Shown here: piece after piece, positions 301-52,027 of the stretch
How the letters are laid out: each line of letters opens with the position of its first letter
Position numbering within the stretch: the stretch's first letter is position 1
Source: Oculina patagonica
Lineage: Eukaryota
Assembly: GCF_052425735.1 (NCBI RefSeq)
Contig: NC_135761.1
Coordinates: 434,001-498,000 of the forward strand
DNA: 64,000 bases
Reading direction: 5' to 3'
Program-made: the position numbers and the translations under genes
Notes under the pieces: generated by a model
What the model was told of the DNA's origin: nothing
Database searches by the model: none
The model's input: only the letters and a program-made list of their open reading frames with translations

Positions 301-3300
301 GCTCGTTATCATTGCCGGCTGTTTTGCTGTAGTTGGAGCGGGGACGGTTTGTTTCTCAAAGCATGTGTACAAGTTGCGATTTCTCTTTGTGGCCCAACGG
401 AGACCTGTATTCACTTGATTTGCAGAACTGGTTGATTCACATTTTGGTGTCCTTAATTTCACCTAGAAAGGTCAGAAAGAGTATGATTACACCTCTTACA
501 CCATCAGTACTAATTGGGCTAGGTTAACTCTACATAAAAGATAAAACTCGTTCATTTGCCGTAAACTAAGAAACCAATTTTTTTTTCTCCAGTTCTGAGA
601 AAGGAATGTGTGGTAGCTCCAAGGCACTTTTAGTGACGTTAATTTACGTACCTGATTTAACACTCAGGCAGAACTTTTAGTTGTAAATGGACAAAGTAAA
701 TAACAGAGAGCTGTGATACTTTAAAACACTTTGATTTACTTTGTGTCTCATTACAGGAAATAAACAAAGCGCTTATAGAACAAAGACGTTTCCGTGGGGT
801 CTGTTAATTTAGTGTTTTACAAGCTTTTGTTATGCAGAGATGCTGTATTGTTAATCGCTTAACCCTTTCAAATCCGAGATTGAAACATGAATTCTCCTTC
901 AGCGCTGATTGCCATACCTTTTTTTTAATGATGTGAGAATTACGTGATACATCAAGACCGACATCTCGTGGTAAGAGAGTCTTTGACTCTCAGTTTATGA
1001 GTTGATCTTACAGCTGATGATTTTGTTAATTCTCATTACCTGTCTTCTTGACAATGTATTGATGTTGTAGGGAGAAATTAGTTATTGATCACTGGCAAGG
1101 GAATTAAGCAATTAAGAAAGGAATTCATTGATTTCTGGTCCCCACATACCTTGTACTGATTGTTCTTCTTTGAGTTTCGATAATTAATCAAAAGGCTTTA
1201 GGAGCAGCGATTTCTTTATCATTTGTAGAGTTTGCAGGGTCACATATTCCACTGTACGAAGATGAATATTGAGTGATTACGAGTAAAGTGCTGATAATTC
1301 GTAGATATCTGCAGATAGCCTGCCAGACCGGAAACCAATTATTGGATATTTTAAGGTTACTAGCCTTAATGTCAGATATACAGTCTGGAGTATTGACAAA
1401 ATAAAAGGAACAGTGGTTGTAAACTGGCCTTGGTCCGAAACAAGTTGCTTGTTAACAACGACAATCAGCTAAAAAGCATTGATTGGATTGTATCATTTAG
1501 TACCTTTAACTTAGTGAAAAATCGTTTTGATTGCAAGGGTGATCATAAACTGCACGATAATGAAGTTACACTTTACAACGTTAAAATCAAAGTAAATTTG
1601 CAGCTGTGTTGACTCAATCTTTGCAGGCGAGAAGTCGGACAACTGAATGTTACATGTTTCGTGTAAATTTTGTCGCAAAAAATTCCGCCGACACTGAAAC
1701 CAATTTCACGAAACCTTTTACAAAGACGCGCACCACCGGAAAGACGCCGGAGAGAAGAAAGTAAACCCATATTGTATATCCTCTTCAATTTTTTTTCCAG
1801 AATCCACGACTTTGAGATTAAAAACTAACAAACGTAAACAGTGTTTAGTTTTGTCAGTCTTCTGCAGATCACGTATCTGTGTTTGGCACTGCTCAAAATC
1901 CATGGCACTGATCACGAACTTGGCTTAACATGACTAGTTTATTTATCTTTTGAGCTTACAGAAATCCGTAGTTTTGAGATTTGGAAGGATTAAACAATAG
2001 TAAGAAATGAAATTGATAGTCTGTCAGGGCTGTCAGTACACAGTCTAGTCAAAACTAATGGAGAAGGAATATGGCGAAGGGCGAAGTTCACGGCAGTCCG
2101 ATGTGTGCGCAAAACCTTTGCTTAGCAAGTTAAAAGTTTTAGTGCAAAACAAAACATTAATTAGAGCTATAGAAATCATGAACACGATTTCAGTATTCTG
2201 ATTTCACGTTATTTAATGCTTTTCTTTTCAAAAATAGTAAATAACTCGATGATAAGTTCTTCTGAGTCGTTAGTATTAAGTAGGTTGTTTTTCAAGAACA
2301 AGTATTGATTGTGATATGTTGAGAGTCCTTTGTATTGAAAACACATTCCCAGCGTTTTTTATAGCACATTGCTTTGCTATTGAATTTTTTATTTAAGGCC
2401 TAACGTGTTTGTTGATCAAAAATCACATAGCTGGAAAACTAGGGCAAACAACTGGCAGACGCCGGACATTTGTTTCGTACATCACGAAAATCGATAAGAC
2501 ACGACATGCGCTTTACGGGTCATAATGTTGGCAAACTTTGCCAAAAAGACGCTTTCAACTGCTAAGCGAACCCACAATTACTTTACAAAACAGAGATTCT
2601 GTTAAGGGACTTGATGAAAGAACGCACACAATAACCCTTGGAATTACTTTCAATTAGAGTAAAATTTCCATAACATTTGTGTACACACGCGCATGCGTCC
2701 ATTATCCCAATTCTTATATGGGACAGATTGTGTTGGCGTGCTATGTTACTGAGTTTTATTTGATCATGTGTTCGTATGCCTCTCGCAGGATAACATTCTG
2801 AGATCGCCTATCGTAGTGGCATTATGTACTTGATGTATCGCTCTATTGAAGTCGCCGGACAATACTCTCATGCTTCAACAAGAGGGATCGATGCTGCCCA
2901 GTAGTGCAAGCGTACATGAAGGAAACCTAAGGCACAGTAAAACAAGTAAGTTCACGACGAGTTGTTTGTTTCACTCTCGCGGTGTGGAAATGTACACGCA
3001 AATCGCTGTTCGTTTCAGTCACGAAATGTTGCAGGAAATTCGCGGGAAATTTTACCCGCGTCGATCGATCGATGGATTTAACAATAAGCTACAATAGATT
3101 GTGTGTTACTGGAATTTCATGCACGGGGCAGGCTGTATGTGTGTGGGATTAGAATGCAAAGAAGCCCTTTCTTTACACCCTTTGCTCATTCCTTTAAAAT
3201 AGATTTTAGCGTGGCTTGTCAGTGTTTTGGGTATCGCAAATTCCATGTAATCTTTGTTCATCGCCGAAATAAGAGAGCCAAGACCTATTGTTTTGATAAA

Positions 3301-4449
3301 TCGATCGCGTTACAAGGAGCTGGCAAGTGGTTCTCAATTTAGAATTGCCGAGAATCGATGACAAAAGACAGGCCTGATTTGTCGTGCGTTGTTGCGCTAT
3401 TTATTGTGTGCGCTAATGGTTAAAGGAAACGTTAATTAATCGGCAAATTTCTGAAGGAAATTCATCTTAATTTCGCGTGTCCTTGAAAATGAAGAGACCG
3501 TTGACGCATTTTCACTTCTTGAAAGAGAACTTGCAATGACAGAAAAATTGGTTAAACAAACACTGTCCATAGAAGCCATAAATGAGTTACGCTCCTCTGC
3601 GTTTCTGGCCAATTAGGGGGCCTCACTTAATTCAAGTTTAAACTTTCTTTCACAAAGATGTGTAAAGCGGTCACAGAAACAATAGTTCATTTACATATAT
3701 AACTTAATGATAAACACCAATGGGAATTGGCTTAAAATACTTACTTAGCTGCTTTCTGATAAAACACTGGATTCGAATGTTTAAATTGCTTTTTGCTGCT
3801 CAAGTTTCCTATTTTTTATCCTTGCGCGGGCGACAACTGAAGTCATCTTTATTCTGTTTATGAGCGGCAAGAATTCTTTTTGCATGACAGAAAGCCCTCT
3901 GTTATTGAAATATACACGACTTATCCGCGAATTTATCGATATACAATTTCATGACATTTGACATGTCGTTAACTTGCTTTCTTTTTTTGTGTCAAAAAGT
4001 ATGTAACAAGCATTTAGTTTCCGCTGTTTGCTTTGAAAAGTAAAGAATGAATCAGGACGCTGTTATTAAAAAAGTTAAGGTTTCTTTCTTGGATGTACAG
4101 TTCTTTTATGGCAGGGCGCAGGGCTTATATCATTTGCACTGTCTTCGCCTGCTTGATTCCCTGTGTTATGTTTATTTTGGTGTTTGTTTTTTTGAAAATC
4201 GAGTTTCTTTTTTGTACATTTTTGAAAACTCTGTTTGATTCTTTGTCTTTGTCTGAGATAGCGAAAAGTAGGTATGAAAATCGTTGTTCACACATAATTC
4301 TCACCTGTGGAGTTTCTGTTGCGTGAAGCGGAAGATATAAAGTCTTTACCGGAAGTCACGTTCCATTCGGTCACGGTGTCACAGCAGACTTCATTGCACT
4401 TTCTCCATTTTTCTAGGTTAAATACTTTCCTGTGGCTTTCAAGAAAATC

Positions 4450-46201: not shown

Positions 46202-49200
46202 TCAATTAACCGGGTGAACCTTAGTTCTGGCTTTCTTTCCTGTGAAAGTTCTTATTTCTTCTCTTCCGTCCTCACTCATTTTTCTTTTCGCCCCTTTTGA
46301 CATGACATCAGCTGATTTGAAGTCTTGATCATCAGTTCTCTCTTCAGTTTCTATTCCATCCTGCCAGGCTTGCTTAACAACAGCAGCCTGTTCATCCAAA
46401 CTGTCGTAGCTGTCATCATTCTCATCCTCTTTCCTTTGGTCCTCATTCATCGTTTTATTCGCCCCTTCTGCCACTAAATCAGTTGATTTGAAGTCTTGAT
46501 CATCAGTTCTCTCTTCAGTTTCTATTCCATCCTGCCAGACTTGCTTAACAACAGCAGCCTGTTCATCCAGACTGTCGTAGCTGTCATCATTCTCATCCTG
46601 CCTTGTTCTCAGCTTCACCACTCTGTTAGCTCGGGGCATCTCACTTTCAGTGGCTGTGGTCGGTCTTCTTAATTCCTCACTCTCGGGATTTTCTTCAGGT
46701 CTTCTAGATTCCCCGGGTTCTTTTCCAAGTGTTGGCTTCTTCTCTTGCTGGTTTTCTTCTTTTCCAGTTTTAACAGGCTTTTCTTGAAATGAACTTGTTC
46801 CACAGGGATCTTTCACAAGTTGCCAAAAGGCTGAACGACATCTTCTGCTTCGCAATACATAGATAACTGGGTTTGATGCGCTTGAAAGAAATGTGCAAAA
46901 ATTGGCCATGAAGCCGAACCATCCACAGAACGCCGTGTCGTCCTTGGCTTCGTGATTCCAGATGGAGAAAGCAATTGTTGGAATGTAGCAGATGCAGAAC
47001 GTTACAATGGTCATAACAACAGTGATAGTGGCTTTGATGTCCATCCTGAGATAAGATAAGATAAGATAAGATAAGATAAAATTTTATTGAACACTCCTAA
47101 AGAGGTTTTTCAGTGAACAATACATGAAGTTGAATAAAATGTAAAATTTAAAATGTGTACACTAATTCCAAAAGACGGCGATCGCGAAGTAGCGAGTAAT
47201 AATAGACCGATTTCACTTTTGCCTATTCTATCTAAGGTGTGTGAAAAAATTGCACTTGATCAGCTCACACCATATTTGACTGAAAAACAAAGACTTGCAT
47301 CTAATCAAAGCGGAAACAAGAAGTGGCATTCAACCGAAACATCATTAATATCCTCTACAGACGCAATTTTACGAGCGATTGACCAAACTAAAGTTACTGC
47401 AGTAGTGTACCTAGACATGAGCAAGGCCTTCGACAGTATCAAGCATGAAATTCTAATAAAGAAACTCAAGAACATTGGCCTCTCCTCATCTGCGTTAACA
47501 TGGTTTTTCTGCGTTAACATGGTTTTCATGAGAAGACAACATGGCGGCCGGAGGTCCCACGCGCGCTCCGTCTTCATCATCGCTATTCTCGCTCAGAGCG
47601 TTTTGCAAGGTCGTTCTATTGTTTCTTCTGAGTAGTTGTTCAACCTTGGGTAGCAGCTGCGGGAAGGAATTGAATTCTACAGCTTATCTACCTGGTAACA
47701 ACGTACAGGCTTGTCACAGCGCCCGGAACGCCATCATACTTCGGGCGTTCTCGAAAGCGAAGATTCCATACTTTCCTAATTCTTCGGCGACTTACTCTAT
47801 GAGGAGAATTAAGCTTTCTGGTGACGTGGAACTGAATCCTGGCATGACTAATTGTAACGGCAATGATACAAGGACAAAAACAAAGCGAAAACAACGAAGT
47901 ATTAACATCGCACATCTTAATGTTCGCTCGCTAAAGAACAAAGAGCACTTCATCCTAGCGAAGGACTTGGCGAAGAAACACAAATTAGATATCTTCACCA
48001 TTTCACATGATTTCAGAGTCCTGGTTAAATGACTCGGTGTCCGATTTAGAAGTTGAATTCCCTGGTTTCTCCCTGTTCAGATTGGACCGAAACTATAAGA
48101 CCGGAGGAGGCGTCTGTGTATTTGTAAACAACCGCTTAAAATGCTTAAGACTTGCCGATTTATCATACATATCAAGCACTGGACTACACCAGCTATGGTT
48201 GAAGGTACAAGTCAAGAACTTCAAGTCATTTATTGTCTGTACAGCTTATCGTACCGATGATGTACCCGTCACCTGCTTTGAGACCGACTTCAGCTTCACG
48301 CTTACATCAGCCATGTCATTCAATGTTCCAATTTTTATATTGGGCGACCTCAATTGCAATTTGCTCCGACACAACGAGCCTGAACCGAAGGCATTGCTGG
48401 ACTTTTGCAATTGCTTTAATCTGACACAAGTAATCAATCAACCAACGAGAATAACTGAGCTCTCCACGAGTTTATTGGATGTGATACTAACTAACAACAA
48501 AGATCTCATCACGGAAACGAAAGTCGTCCCTCACTCAATAAGTGACCACGATCTCATCATCGCGACACTAAACCTGAAGAAACCTCGTCCCAAGCCTACT
48601 TACACTACTACGAGGAGCTTCAAGAATTACAACAAGGAAGCGTTTCTTAAAGATATTTCAAATGCCCCCTGGTCAGTTATCGACATTTTTGATGATGCTG
48701 AAGACAAGTTGAACGCGTTTAATGATCTGTTCAACCAAGTCCTCGACCAACACGCGCCTGTTAAAACTGTTAAAGTGAGAACTCGCCCCTGTCCATTTAT
48801 TAATGATAACATTCGCGCGTTAATGAAAACCAGAGATCACTGGCATAAACTAGCAAGACGAACAAACGATCCCGCCATTTGGTCGGGCTATAGGAATTTT
48901 AGACGCGAAGTAAAATGGGAATTACGACTTGCCCAAAAGACCTTTGTAGAAGATCAGATCAGGCAAAATGCAAATGACACTAACACTATGTGGAAGACCA
49001 TCCGATCATGCATACCAAAGAAATCAGCAAGCGCAAAAAGCTTTTGTAAAGATGACAAGACTATAGCAAACGAATTCAATCAATTTTTCACCTCAGTTGG
49101 GAAAACAACCCTCGAGAAAATCGAATCACTCGCCGATGAATGCGGATACACTCCTTCACATGCATCCTTTGTTCCTATACAATACCCTCTCTCGGAACAA

Positions 49201-52027
49201 TTCACGTTTCGCGATGTCGAGTACTGTGAAGTTGAAAGAGTTGTGAAGTCGCTAGCTAACAACAAAGCACCTGGCACTGACAAAATACCATCCCGTGTCA
49301 TAAAGGAATCTGCTCCTGTTATCATTCCATCGATAACCTCTATTATAAACAGTTCATTCAATTGTGGTGTTTTCCCTAGTGTCTGGAAAACGGCCTGTCT
49401 GAGCCTAGCCTCGGCTTGAAGAGGAGGCAAATTGAGCAGCATTCTCTGTGGAGAAAACGGAAAAACAGCTGCTTCCTCAATATGACGCCAAACAGGGAAT
49501 CGCGAAATGGCTAATTTATGACTTGACTCTCATAGAGCCTCTCTCCAACTAGGTGTATAAGTGGGTACCGGCGAACTTATGCTCTGGCGGGAAATGAATT
49601 ACTCCTAGTTGCTTCATGCAAGAGAAACCAGGATAAGTCCAGCCTGCATGGGCCACTAGGCTCGACGCAGACTTAAGCTACAAAATTCATATCATTCTAC
49701 TTTGAAATTGAAGAGTGAGCAGCTTTAGAAATGATAAAACTAAACCACTTTTAACATGTTAAGTTGACCGGCTAAGTTAAGTCAGTTATTTTGCTAAAGA
49801 CGACACAAAATAGTAAGATATATTTTTTTGTGGCACGAGTTTTTACATGCTGAACCCACGTCGAAGCTAGCATATAATCAATAATTATTCTCTGATATTA
49901 CGTGTAAATGCCGGGGCAACCAACGAGGAAATTTAAGGTGGCTCAACTGGATTTTCAAGGGGTGACACCGTTCAAGTTTGAGAATAAACTACGTCGCCAT
50001 TAAAACGATCACCACCGCTGCATTAGATAAAGATGAAATTTTTTCATGACCAGTACTATAGTGACATCGGAGTTGCCATAGCGACGAAATGACGTCATTA
50101 CGTTTTTTACTTTCGCTCGTATTCCTCGGAACCAGGAGATTCTTTGGAAAATCGCTCAAAGGAGCTTGTACCACACATAGCTGCCTCGATGTTGGCAAAG
50201 TTTAAATAAATTCTATGAGAGCGTTTTCGAAATATTTGGGGATGAAGTTTTCGGAGCTATAAATACAGTCAAAAACATACTGACGCGAAAATGGGGTAAT
50301 ATCTAAAGAAAACGACGCGTCTGTGAATTGAAATTTCATCTTATAGTAGTGAGATTTCATTTAAAGTCGTGTGTGAAACAAACAGTGGTGGGAATTGCTT
50401 TGGTCGATTGCGAGAAAAAAGAATTTGATGAACGTGCGTTCAAGTGCTCTTGTTGCCATTTTTGTTTATAATTTGGTCTATGCCTGCAAAAGTGACAATC
50501 AATTAAAAACGGCTCGATAAATTTTTTTAAAATTTGACAAACTCGAGGTTTGTCATCAATTGATATAGCTTGCAAGTTTCAAGCTCATTGAAAACATTTA
50601 AGGCAGTAATATTGGGCCTCTAATGTACTGATTTTTTTCTCTCAGATTTCGTGTTTACACCTCATATCGTTTCCTCATATCCACGGGCACGACTTCAGCA
50701 AAAAATTAATTTGCATTTAATAGGAGGCTCGACTGCTTTCCGAACAATTTTCCGAAACATGCTTATATTGCTTAAAAAATTGTAACAGCATTTGTCGGGC
50801 TATTGATGTCAAGGGCTTCTGTCCAGAAAACGAAAGCTATTATTTTGCATACATTGTCATTGCTATTCTTACCCCAACGCAGATTAGCATCAGGGCCCTT
50901 TAAGTTTTTTTTTTTTAATACAACCGTTCTCCTCATACAAATCCTTGTATTTCGAGCGTAATAGCTTGGGCTACCTGTGATTTGATCCGTCAGGATTTTT
51001 TTTTTACTTATTCTGGTCTTAATGACACTGACAATATAAGAACGTATCGAGAATTAAACTTCTTTCTTATGTGGTTTTTAAGTTTTTTCCTTTTAAGAAG
51101 TTTCTGCATCTTGATAAATGGCTCAGCTGAAAGCGGATGCGTTTTCTTTTTACCCTCGAGCGAATTATTTTATTGCAGAAATCTTAAGTTTACCTTTAAA
51201 ATTGCTTGACAAAGTCGCATAAAAGTTTTATGGTATTTGTCAACTACTCGGCCTGAAAGCCAAGTATAACATGAATTGCTTATAGAAACGACTTTTCAGT
51301 TCGTGGTCTGTGTTAGAATATGGTAATCACTCTTAGCTAATCCGTGGCCAAAGCACAATAGTTTGACGACACTTTTTAAAATCCTTCTTTCAGTAATAAT
51401 TACATTTTCTTACCTGTTTTTTCTTCTGATGAATGAAATAATTTGTTAACATTCCAATGACTGTTGAAGCAATCTTTGATAAGGCCATGAGTGATGCTAC
51501 CACTACCTTTCTTTCCTGAAATATTTTTCTCCTGGAAACAATCAATGGCTCCCCCTCAAAATCCATGCCAAACAAGTGAACAGAAGAGAGCGCCGTCAGT
51601 ATGGTACATACCAGCCACATAACGAACACAGCTATCTTGGCTTTCTTGGGTGTTTTCCATGTAAAGTACTTTAAATCCAGGTACACTGCCAGGAACCTGT
51701 CCAGCATTAGTACAGACATGGACACCAGGTTAAGGAGAGCAAATTCCAGGTTCAATGAGCTGGAGATGATGGCCCATGAAGTTTTTCCTGTCAACCAACT
51801 GGTCTGCAGGACACAGAACATAGCAAACAGCGGAACGTTGACAAGCGCGTTAAGAAAATCGATCAGTGCGAGATTGGCGAAAAGAATGTTTGGAAATTAC
51901 GAAACACCTTGAAGCGAGCGAAGATGGCGACAAATGATCCGTTACCAATCACTGCAATAAATGTAAGCGTCACAGCCAAGAACATCATTGCAGCTTGAGT
52001 AGCAAAAGATTTTTCTTGAGGTATCAT
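46202..52027 (-). pseudogene. Class A (rhodopsin-like) GPCR, disrupted
   Basis: Exon 1 (52027-51414) encodes TM1 GN, TM2 ANLALID, TM3 LDRF, TM4 W and TM5, with a 1-nt deletion near 51892. Exon 2 starts at 49445 (RMLLNLPPLQAEARLR), is split by the LINE at 47051-49398, and resumes as MDIKAT..CYIP..NPVIY to the stop at 46202. Confidence 0.9.
47051..49398 (+). mobile_element. Rearranged CR1/L2-group non-LTR retrotransposon (APE endonuclease + partial RT)
   Basis: Endonuclease motifs HLNVRSL, ISESWL, GGGV, GDLNCN, LLDVIL and SDHDLI; then KAPGTDKIP and FPSVWKTA. A separate RT piece has NRPISLLPILSKVCEK and YLDMSKAFDSI. The (ATAAG)n tail and 3' UTR are in the opposite orientation. CTGAG is duplicated at 47046-47050 and 49399-49403. 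Confidence 0.93.

Follow-up and report, generated by a model that had tools for sequence, protein, structure and literature searches.

How can a single retrotransposon insertion carry its parts both inverted and in the wrong order? The question is raised by a long interspersed nuclear element (LINE) in the genome of the coral Oculina patagonica, at positions 47046-49403 of a window of 64,000 nucleotides (nt) (G000:C4:434001-498000; the window is this whole stretch, and its positions are counted from its first letter). A first-pass annotation of the window had described the insert as inverted and permuted inside one target-site duplication (TSD). We mapped its segments to a single family of APE-type LINEs, and the insert was probably made in one retrotransposition event of this young coral family, through twin priming and a subsequent template switch back to a part of the RNA that was still uncopied.

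The yardstick for the mapping was L013, a copy on chromosome 1 (G000:C1:468700-473000; element at 546-3939, 3,394 nt, one long open reading frame, ORF), to which the insert was aligned by BLAST; all references used here are single natural copies rather than a family consensus. Between its two CTGAG copies the insert reads, on the + strand, as an inverted 3' tail with the end of the 3' untranslated region (UTR; segment D), a reverse transcriptase (RT) piece (segment B), a re-copy of the last 19 nt of B, 9 extra nt, the 5' end with the endonuclease (segment A), and 4 extra nt (Table 1). Together with the tail, D spans 47052-47164 and equals nt 3394-3282 of the element in reverse, about 113 nt that are identical to L013 up to the junction. 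Positions 47164-47167 are common to D and B (A, or AATT versus AGTT). Segment A differs from L013 by 16 substitutions (0.9%) and one 10-bp insertion. Two parts of the element, nt 1850-1861 (12 nt) and nt 2206-3281, are absent from the insert. In L013, intact at this point, the protein reads WKTA-EVCP-IPKDGD, so that B lies directly downstream of A in the element whereas it lies upstream of A in the window; the order is therefore a true permutation, added to the inversion.

The mapping agrees with the annotation on the two bounding CTGAG copies, on the perfect 19-bp tandem duplication (the units at 47489-47507 and 47508-47526 are identical), and on the rule that in intact elements WKTA is followed within a few residues by IPK..D, the 12 nt between the two pieces being those missing here. 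It redraws the joints. The tail and 3' UTR are inverted as claimed, and they run to 47164-47167 rather than to about 47160; the RT piece lies on the + strand, and the L of its supposed start LIPKDGD comes from the 3' UTR rather than from the RT; the 5' end and endonuclease do extend on the + strand to FPSVWKTA, with 9 extra nt before A and 4 after it.

Table 1. Coordinates of the insert, its segments and the interrupted receptor gene (positions in the window; element positions after L013)
Feature	Position	Strand	Remarks
Left TSD copy CTGAG, 5 bp	47046..47050		Single CTGAG between matching flanks in paralogue L047
LINE 3' tail (TTATC)n, adjoining the left TSD	47051..47078	-	Same tail ends L013, L014, L015, L016, L029, L038
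Segment D, 3' UTR end, inverted relative to the other pieces	47079..47164	-	Element nt 3282-3394
Segment B, RT piece IPKDGD...LSSSALTWF	47164..47507	+	Element nt 1862-2205; 100% identical to L013 2407-2750
Second copy of the last 19 nt of B, perfect	47508..47526	+	Element nt 2187-2205
Filler of 9 extra nt, CATGAGAAG, following the 19-nt re-copy and preceding base 1 of the element	47527..47535		
Segment A: 5' end, 2A-like N-terminus, APE endonuclease, linker to ...FPSVWKTA	47536..49394	+	Element nt 1-1849
10-bp insertion private to the window copy, frameshift in the endonuclease region	48000..48009	+	
4 extra nt CTGT between segment A and the right TSD	49395..49398		Intact element here: ...ACGG-CTGAG-GTATG
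Right TSD copy CTGAG	49399..49403		Same letters as element nt 1849-1853; would double as priming microhomology
Distal part of last exon: TM6, TM7 with NPxxY, long C-tail	46202..47045	-	Open 280-aa frame remains; Pfam 7tm_1
Proximal part of same exon, MLLNLPPLQAEARLR, severed by the insertion	49404..49442	-	
Upstream exon: TM3 with DRF, TM4, TM5	51390..51821	-	Matches full-length coral receptors P0012, P0016

The form of the target before insertion could be read from a paralogue on chromosome 7 (L047), which aligns at 92% on the left side of the insert and at 85% on the right. The stretch common to both alignments is exactly 5 bases long, one CTGAG. The single CTGAG of the paralogue indicates that the 5-bp target duplication is real and that the target suffered no other loss or rearrangement. 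The annotation had proposed to look for an empty allele; the empty form is known from this paralogue, not from an allele. With segments that are 99-100% identical to one family and flanks that meet at a single CTGAG in L047, the arrangement is not a product of chance.

A genome-wide search recovered about 130-150 pieces of the family. Its 5' end is present in only one other copy, L013, and the first base of segment A is the first base of L013; contigs of other corals also start matching there. Both the APE endonuclease and the RT are encoded in the 940-aa ORF of L013, and in the window Pfam detects Exo_endo_phos_2 (E 7e-9) in the ORF 48007-49419 and the first half of an RT, RVT_1 (E 1e-14), in 47153-47635. 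The 26 copies sampled are all simply truncated at the 5' end; they share the 3' end and match the reference copy at 91-100% identity. An endonuclease with an RT, a tail adjoining a TSD that is single in the paralogue, and a truncated family with a shared 3' end place the insert among the APE-type LINE insertions made by target-primed reverse transcription. Two independent copies, L029 (at its position 3639; G000:C4:5203038) and L038 (at 282; G000:C12:9613381), are truncated at nt 3282-3283, exactly where D ends; it appears that copying tends to stop at this site, about 113 nt from the tail, or that a short RNA species begins there.

Segments B and D are 100% identical to the chromosome 1 copy and A is 0.9% different from it, and this near-identity to one copy indicates that all three belong to the same family and are of about the same age. 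The annotation had stated that segments of different families or ages would point to independent nested insertions; A, B and D come from one young family, 99-100% identical to L013. Since neither B nor A has a tail or a duplication of its own, nested independent insertions do not fit. The joint of B, the 19-nt re-copy, the 9 nt and A occurs once genome-wide, in the window only, and so no rearranged master copy contained in the assembly can have passed it on.

The right end of segment A carries the main clue to the mechanism. The element (3,394 nt) contains CTGAG at only three sites, one of which (nt 1849-1853) is where A ends, a coincidence expected by chance at about 0.2% of positions. That A ends at a CTGAG of the element is a signature of internal priming, that is, of twin priming. 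Read on the - strand, the complement of A is followed by the 9 nt, then by nt 2205-2187, then by nt 2205-1862; a complementary DNA (cDNA) must therefore have left the 5' end of the RNA and re-entered it at nt 2205 twice. As the annotation had argued, simple twin priming does not give this order: the mapping shows B and then A, with nt 2206-3281 absent.

We propose the following course of events. The + strand was nicked after CTGAG, and, as the place of the tail beside the left duplication shows, its 3' end primed a first cDNA on the (CUUAU)n tail of the RNA; this cDNA yielded only 113 nt plus the tail and ended at nt 3282, the recurrent truncation point. The second nicked target end, ...CTCAG-3' on the - strand, would have primed a second cDNA internally, at CUGAG (nt 1849-1853), which would have been copied to the first base of the element and run off the 5' end of the RNA. 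Its 3' end would then have come down on the same RNA molecule, twice at nt 2205, to be extended towards its own start: after the 9 extra nt follow nt 2205 down to 2187, and then a second copy that runs from nt 2205 down to 1862. The second cDNA would have halted 8-12 nt before its own start, where it would have met its own primer junction, or where the copied RNA had already been removed; the real stop was possibly closer to the start, followed by trimming back to the A(A/G)TT overlap. The 3' ends of both cDNAs would finally have paired via A(A/G)TT and been filled in, giving tail'-D'-B-A on the + strand.

Whether the second cDNA was extended on the RNA molecule that it had just left is a narrower question. 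B starts 12 nt past the end of A (8 nt when the shared CTGAG is counted), and by coordinate arithmetic a random stop would fall so close in less than 1% of cases. The simplest account of these near-abutting ends would be that the same RNA molecule was reused until the enzyme met its own primer junction or the end of the RNA. In this form, in which the RT circled one and the same LINE RNA, being primed at the internal CUGAG, running off the 5' end, coming back at nt 2205 and hitting its own start, the proposal is a real possibility to which we give somewhat less than even weight. If the RT did circle one RNA, the primer junction would have left its footprint in the 8-12 missing nt, and the retrotransposition complex would hold the 5' end and an internal region of the RNA together. 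The 7-mer AACATGG is common to the 5' end of the RNA and the landing region (about 1% of element windows share such a 7-mer) and may have aided the landing, though the homology at the joint is not clean. Folded as RNA, the 3' module and the nt 1849 region did no better than shuffled sequences (z-scores 0.1 and 0.25), so structure does not explain the stops. A search of the element for the source of the 9-nt and 4-nt fillers gave no convincing template; the only match, of 10 nt, overlaps the 19-nt unit and could have arisen by chance. The 9 nt CATGAGAAG are either untemplated or a short 5' flank brought along from an unseen source copy.

We also searched sequencing data, in the form of short Logan contigs of four runs; the repeat of the tail (47041-47091) was masked in them, and two joints were lost at that place. 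In all four runs the only form seen was the canonical joint, from A to B, as in other copies, and the empty allele was not seen in these short contigs either. A contig of run X1 covers 47585-48877, 1.3 kb of A, including the private 10-bp insertion and private substitutions; the 10-bp insertion is missing from the contigs of runs X3, X5 and X15. X1, the run in which this sequence is best represented, may come from the assembled sample. Exact-pattern scans of metagenome contigs gave no match for the predicted empty site or for a joint of nt 2205 to nt 1, and an exact look-up found the junction-spanning ORFs absent from public assemblies.

Several observations weigh against twin priming with a switch on one RNA. 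None of the four new junctions is bridged by any short contig shown from the four runs. No inversion was seen in the 26 other sampled copies, and twin priming is therefore uncommon in the family. The microhomology at the right junction is not clean, as 4 extra nt stand between A and CTGAG. The landing at nt 2205 does not look like a simple homology joint, and the double landing would fit the 3' end of a broken RNA better; it hints, suggestively only, that the RNA ended there. Finally, the one argument for a same RNA molecule is that the breakpoints nearly abut.

These points lead to the alternative that comes closest, a single event on broken or separate RNAs. With cuts near nt 1850-1861 and at nt 2205 and end-to-end jumps between the fragments, the fragment ending near nt 1853 would have been copied first and nt 1862-2205 next, and the permutation would be the order of pick-up. 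A discrete RNA 3' end accounts for two landings exactly at nt 2205 better than a switch on one continuous RNA does, and end-to-end jumping with extra nt is established for the R2 RT (Bibillo and Eickbush, as cited in PMC2912911). The 16 substitutions of A relative to L013, against none in B and D, would even permit different source RNAs for A and for B with D; this possibility was rejected, the difference in divergence being not significant (about 3 expected in B, 0 seen) and several of the differences in A being private. The break would also have to coincide with one of only three CTGAG sites. Broken RNAs fit almost as well as the proposed course of events, and we consider them unlikely to be the explanation. 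The strongest form of the circling account would make the template a closed circle, and the annotation had indeed offered a circular intermediate beside multiple template switches within a single event. A covalent circle of RNA or cDNA comprising nt 1-2205, used as template or captured, and opened or primed at CTGAG on integration, would explain why the two sense pieces together amount to a nearly perfect circular permutation of nt 1-2205 that lacks no more than 8-12 nt where the circle was opened. Its closure joint, which holds a 19-nt re-copy as well as 9 extra nt, does not resemble RNA ligation or back-splicing, and is better explained by a template switch; a DNA circle would need additional breakage and joining steps, and such a joint is found nowhere else in the genome. 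Of the annotation's proposal, the single event and the switch are thus supported, while the circle fits the joint less well and seems to us very unlikely.

The two remaining alternatives give up the single event or the structure itself. A truncated or twin-primed insertion might have been rearranged later at the DNA level, or independent insertions might have nested; D alone does resemble ordinary very short truncated copies such as L029 and L038. Yet the B-A block lacks a tail and a duplication of its own, only one 5-bp duplication is present with the host flanks intact, and A ends on target microhomology. With B and D still 100% identical to another copy, there was little time for a rearrangement in many steps. 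No single DNA-level step turns a collinear product into the observed order, and a series of ordinary ones would give it only with several coincidences; we regard such a history as quite improbable. An assembly artefact, in which reads of other family copies were stitched into a simpler insertion, is conceivable in a family with about 130 near-identical 3' fragments, the more so as the new joints are unbridged by the contigs shown and their ORFs are missing from public assemblies. The filler and the 19-nt re-copy at the joints, however, occur in no other copy, the private variants of A including the 10-bp insertion are reproduced over 1.3 kb by the X1 contig, and a perfect duplication of a verified target encloses the structure, in a stretch free of N. 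An artefact is therefore unlikely, and in our estimate highly so.

Twin priming is the textbook origin of 5'-inverted LINE-1 (L1) copies (Ostertag and Kazazian 2001, as summarised in PMC2912911). The coral insert resembles these copies in that one TSD encloses a tail-bearing 3' piece and an inverted 5' piece, with microhomology between the second target end and the internal RNA site (here with 4 extra nt) and a short microhomology at the cDNA joint. It departs from them in lacking collinearity: the inverted part is made up of two pieces whose order is swapped, with the 19-nt re-copy and the 9 nt inside. Moreover, 1,076 nt are missing between the sense and inverted parts, where tens of nt are usual, the inverted cDNA reaches the true 5' end of the element, and the element belongs not to L1 but to a coral LINE family with one ORF and a tail of (TTATC)n.

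Closer parallels come from a long-read preprint on L1 in human tumours, which describes two rarer forms of twin priming with one added switch (20 and 3 of 3,598 insertions). As in those forms, twin priming is here combined with a further transfer of a growing cDNA along the LINE RNA in one insertion. In the tumour forms it is either the internally primed cDNA that moves to an upstream, not yet copied region (twin priming and 5' switching) or the tail-primed cDNA that moves. The coral insert, a germline insertion in a cnidarian, would instead record a run-off at the RNA 5' end and then a transfer in the downstream direction, from nt 1 past the priming site at nt 1849 to nt 2205, giving a near-perfect circular permutation. 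Template jumping at the 5' end of a template is known for the R2 enzyme (Bibillo and Eickbush 2002, 2004, as cited in PMC2912911); the likeness lies in a switch made when the donor had been copied to its 5' end and in the extra nt at the joint. Unlike in R2 jumping, the acceptor site at nt 2205 is internal, unless the RNA was broken there, and the first 19 nt were copied twice. Run-off followed by downstream transfer is not among the two described tumour L1 forms, and is a rare variant of a known mechanism.

Odd-ordered insertions of this kind are natural records of the LINE copying machinery in cells. This case suggests that priming on the RNA by the second nicked target end, via a 5-nt match, can occur in a cnidarian LINE outside L1, that the enzyme can switch templates once it is at the RNA 5' end, and that the same RNA molecule may be re-used until its own starting point is met. 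It adds a third geometry to the two patterns of twin priming plus switching seen in human tumours, and it provides a signature that can be searched for in long-read assemblies, namely two inverted pieces that abut in the element and are swapped in the insertion. As one event in one assembly it has the weight of a well-resolved example, not of a new principle.

The insertion interrupts a rhodopsin-type receptor gene of the - strand in its last coding exon, which begins near 49442 and whose distal part holds transmembrane segments (TM) 6 and 7. Proteins P0001-P0003 read LQAEARL(R/K)MD(I/M)KAT without interruption, and related coral proteins run ...LQAEARLRMDIKAT... uninterrupted across the insertion site. 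The insertion breaks the reading frame just before TM6, and the locus is a fresh knockout of a coral receptor gene. The C-tail of the receptor (46202-46700, - strand) contains two near-identical acidic repeats of about 40 residues (EDENDDSYDSLDEQAAVVKQ...TDDQDFKS); the best-matching protein, P0001, has one. An intron of the receptor holds a repeat of about 380 bp (49930-50300), for which a first look at the genome gave more than 1,900 candidates at about 90% identity, often as inverted pairs.

Both 5'-complete copies of the LINE carry a 2A-like motif at the N-terminus (window 47541-47846; L013 551-895), reading GDVELNPG-M and not NPG-P. Its presence in both copies shows that this is not a private mutation of the window insertion. 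2A-like sequences are known at the N-terminus of APE-type LINEs (PMC3708506). The frame breaks of the two copies differ: the window copy has its 10-bp insertion (ATTTCA, CATG, ATTTCA again), and L013 has a stop between the 2A-like leader and the endonuclease, around 895-938. No intact copy of the family was seen in the assembly. One 5'-truncated copy, L016, opens with a tandem re-copy of its own, about 19-21 nt long, at its 5' junction (312-352; G000:C1:45203211-45203251); the re-copies of about 19 nt in L016 and in the window may reflect a recurrent stutter of the family's enzyme at template ends.

A fragment of the LINE is also found in a satellite. In two small contigs, L045 (G000:C756:1-3128) and L046 (G000:C1790:1-3000), a unit of about 675 bp is repeated in at least five tandem units per contig, and consists of a 174-nt fragment of the LINE 3' end and about 500 bp of other sequence. 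Contig word depth, summed, reached hundreds to thousands of times that of neighbouring bins at 47108-47209 and 49556-49657 in all four runs; this sum takes in all contigs, those of other organisms included, and is not a copy number. Such depths suggest very abundant short repeats. The repeat at 47108-47209 may be a LINE 3' UTR module that is also present in another family, and the one at 49556-49657 is an unrelated repeat in an intron of the receptor.

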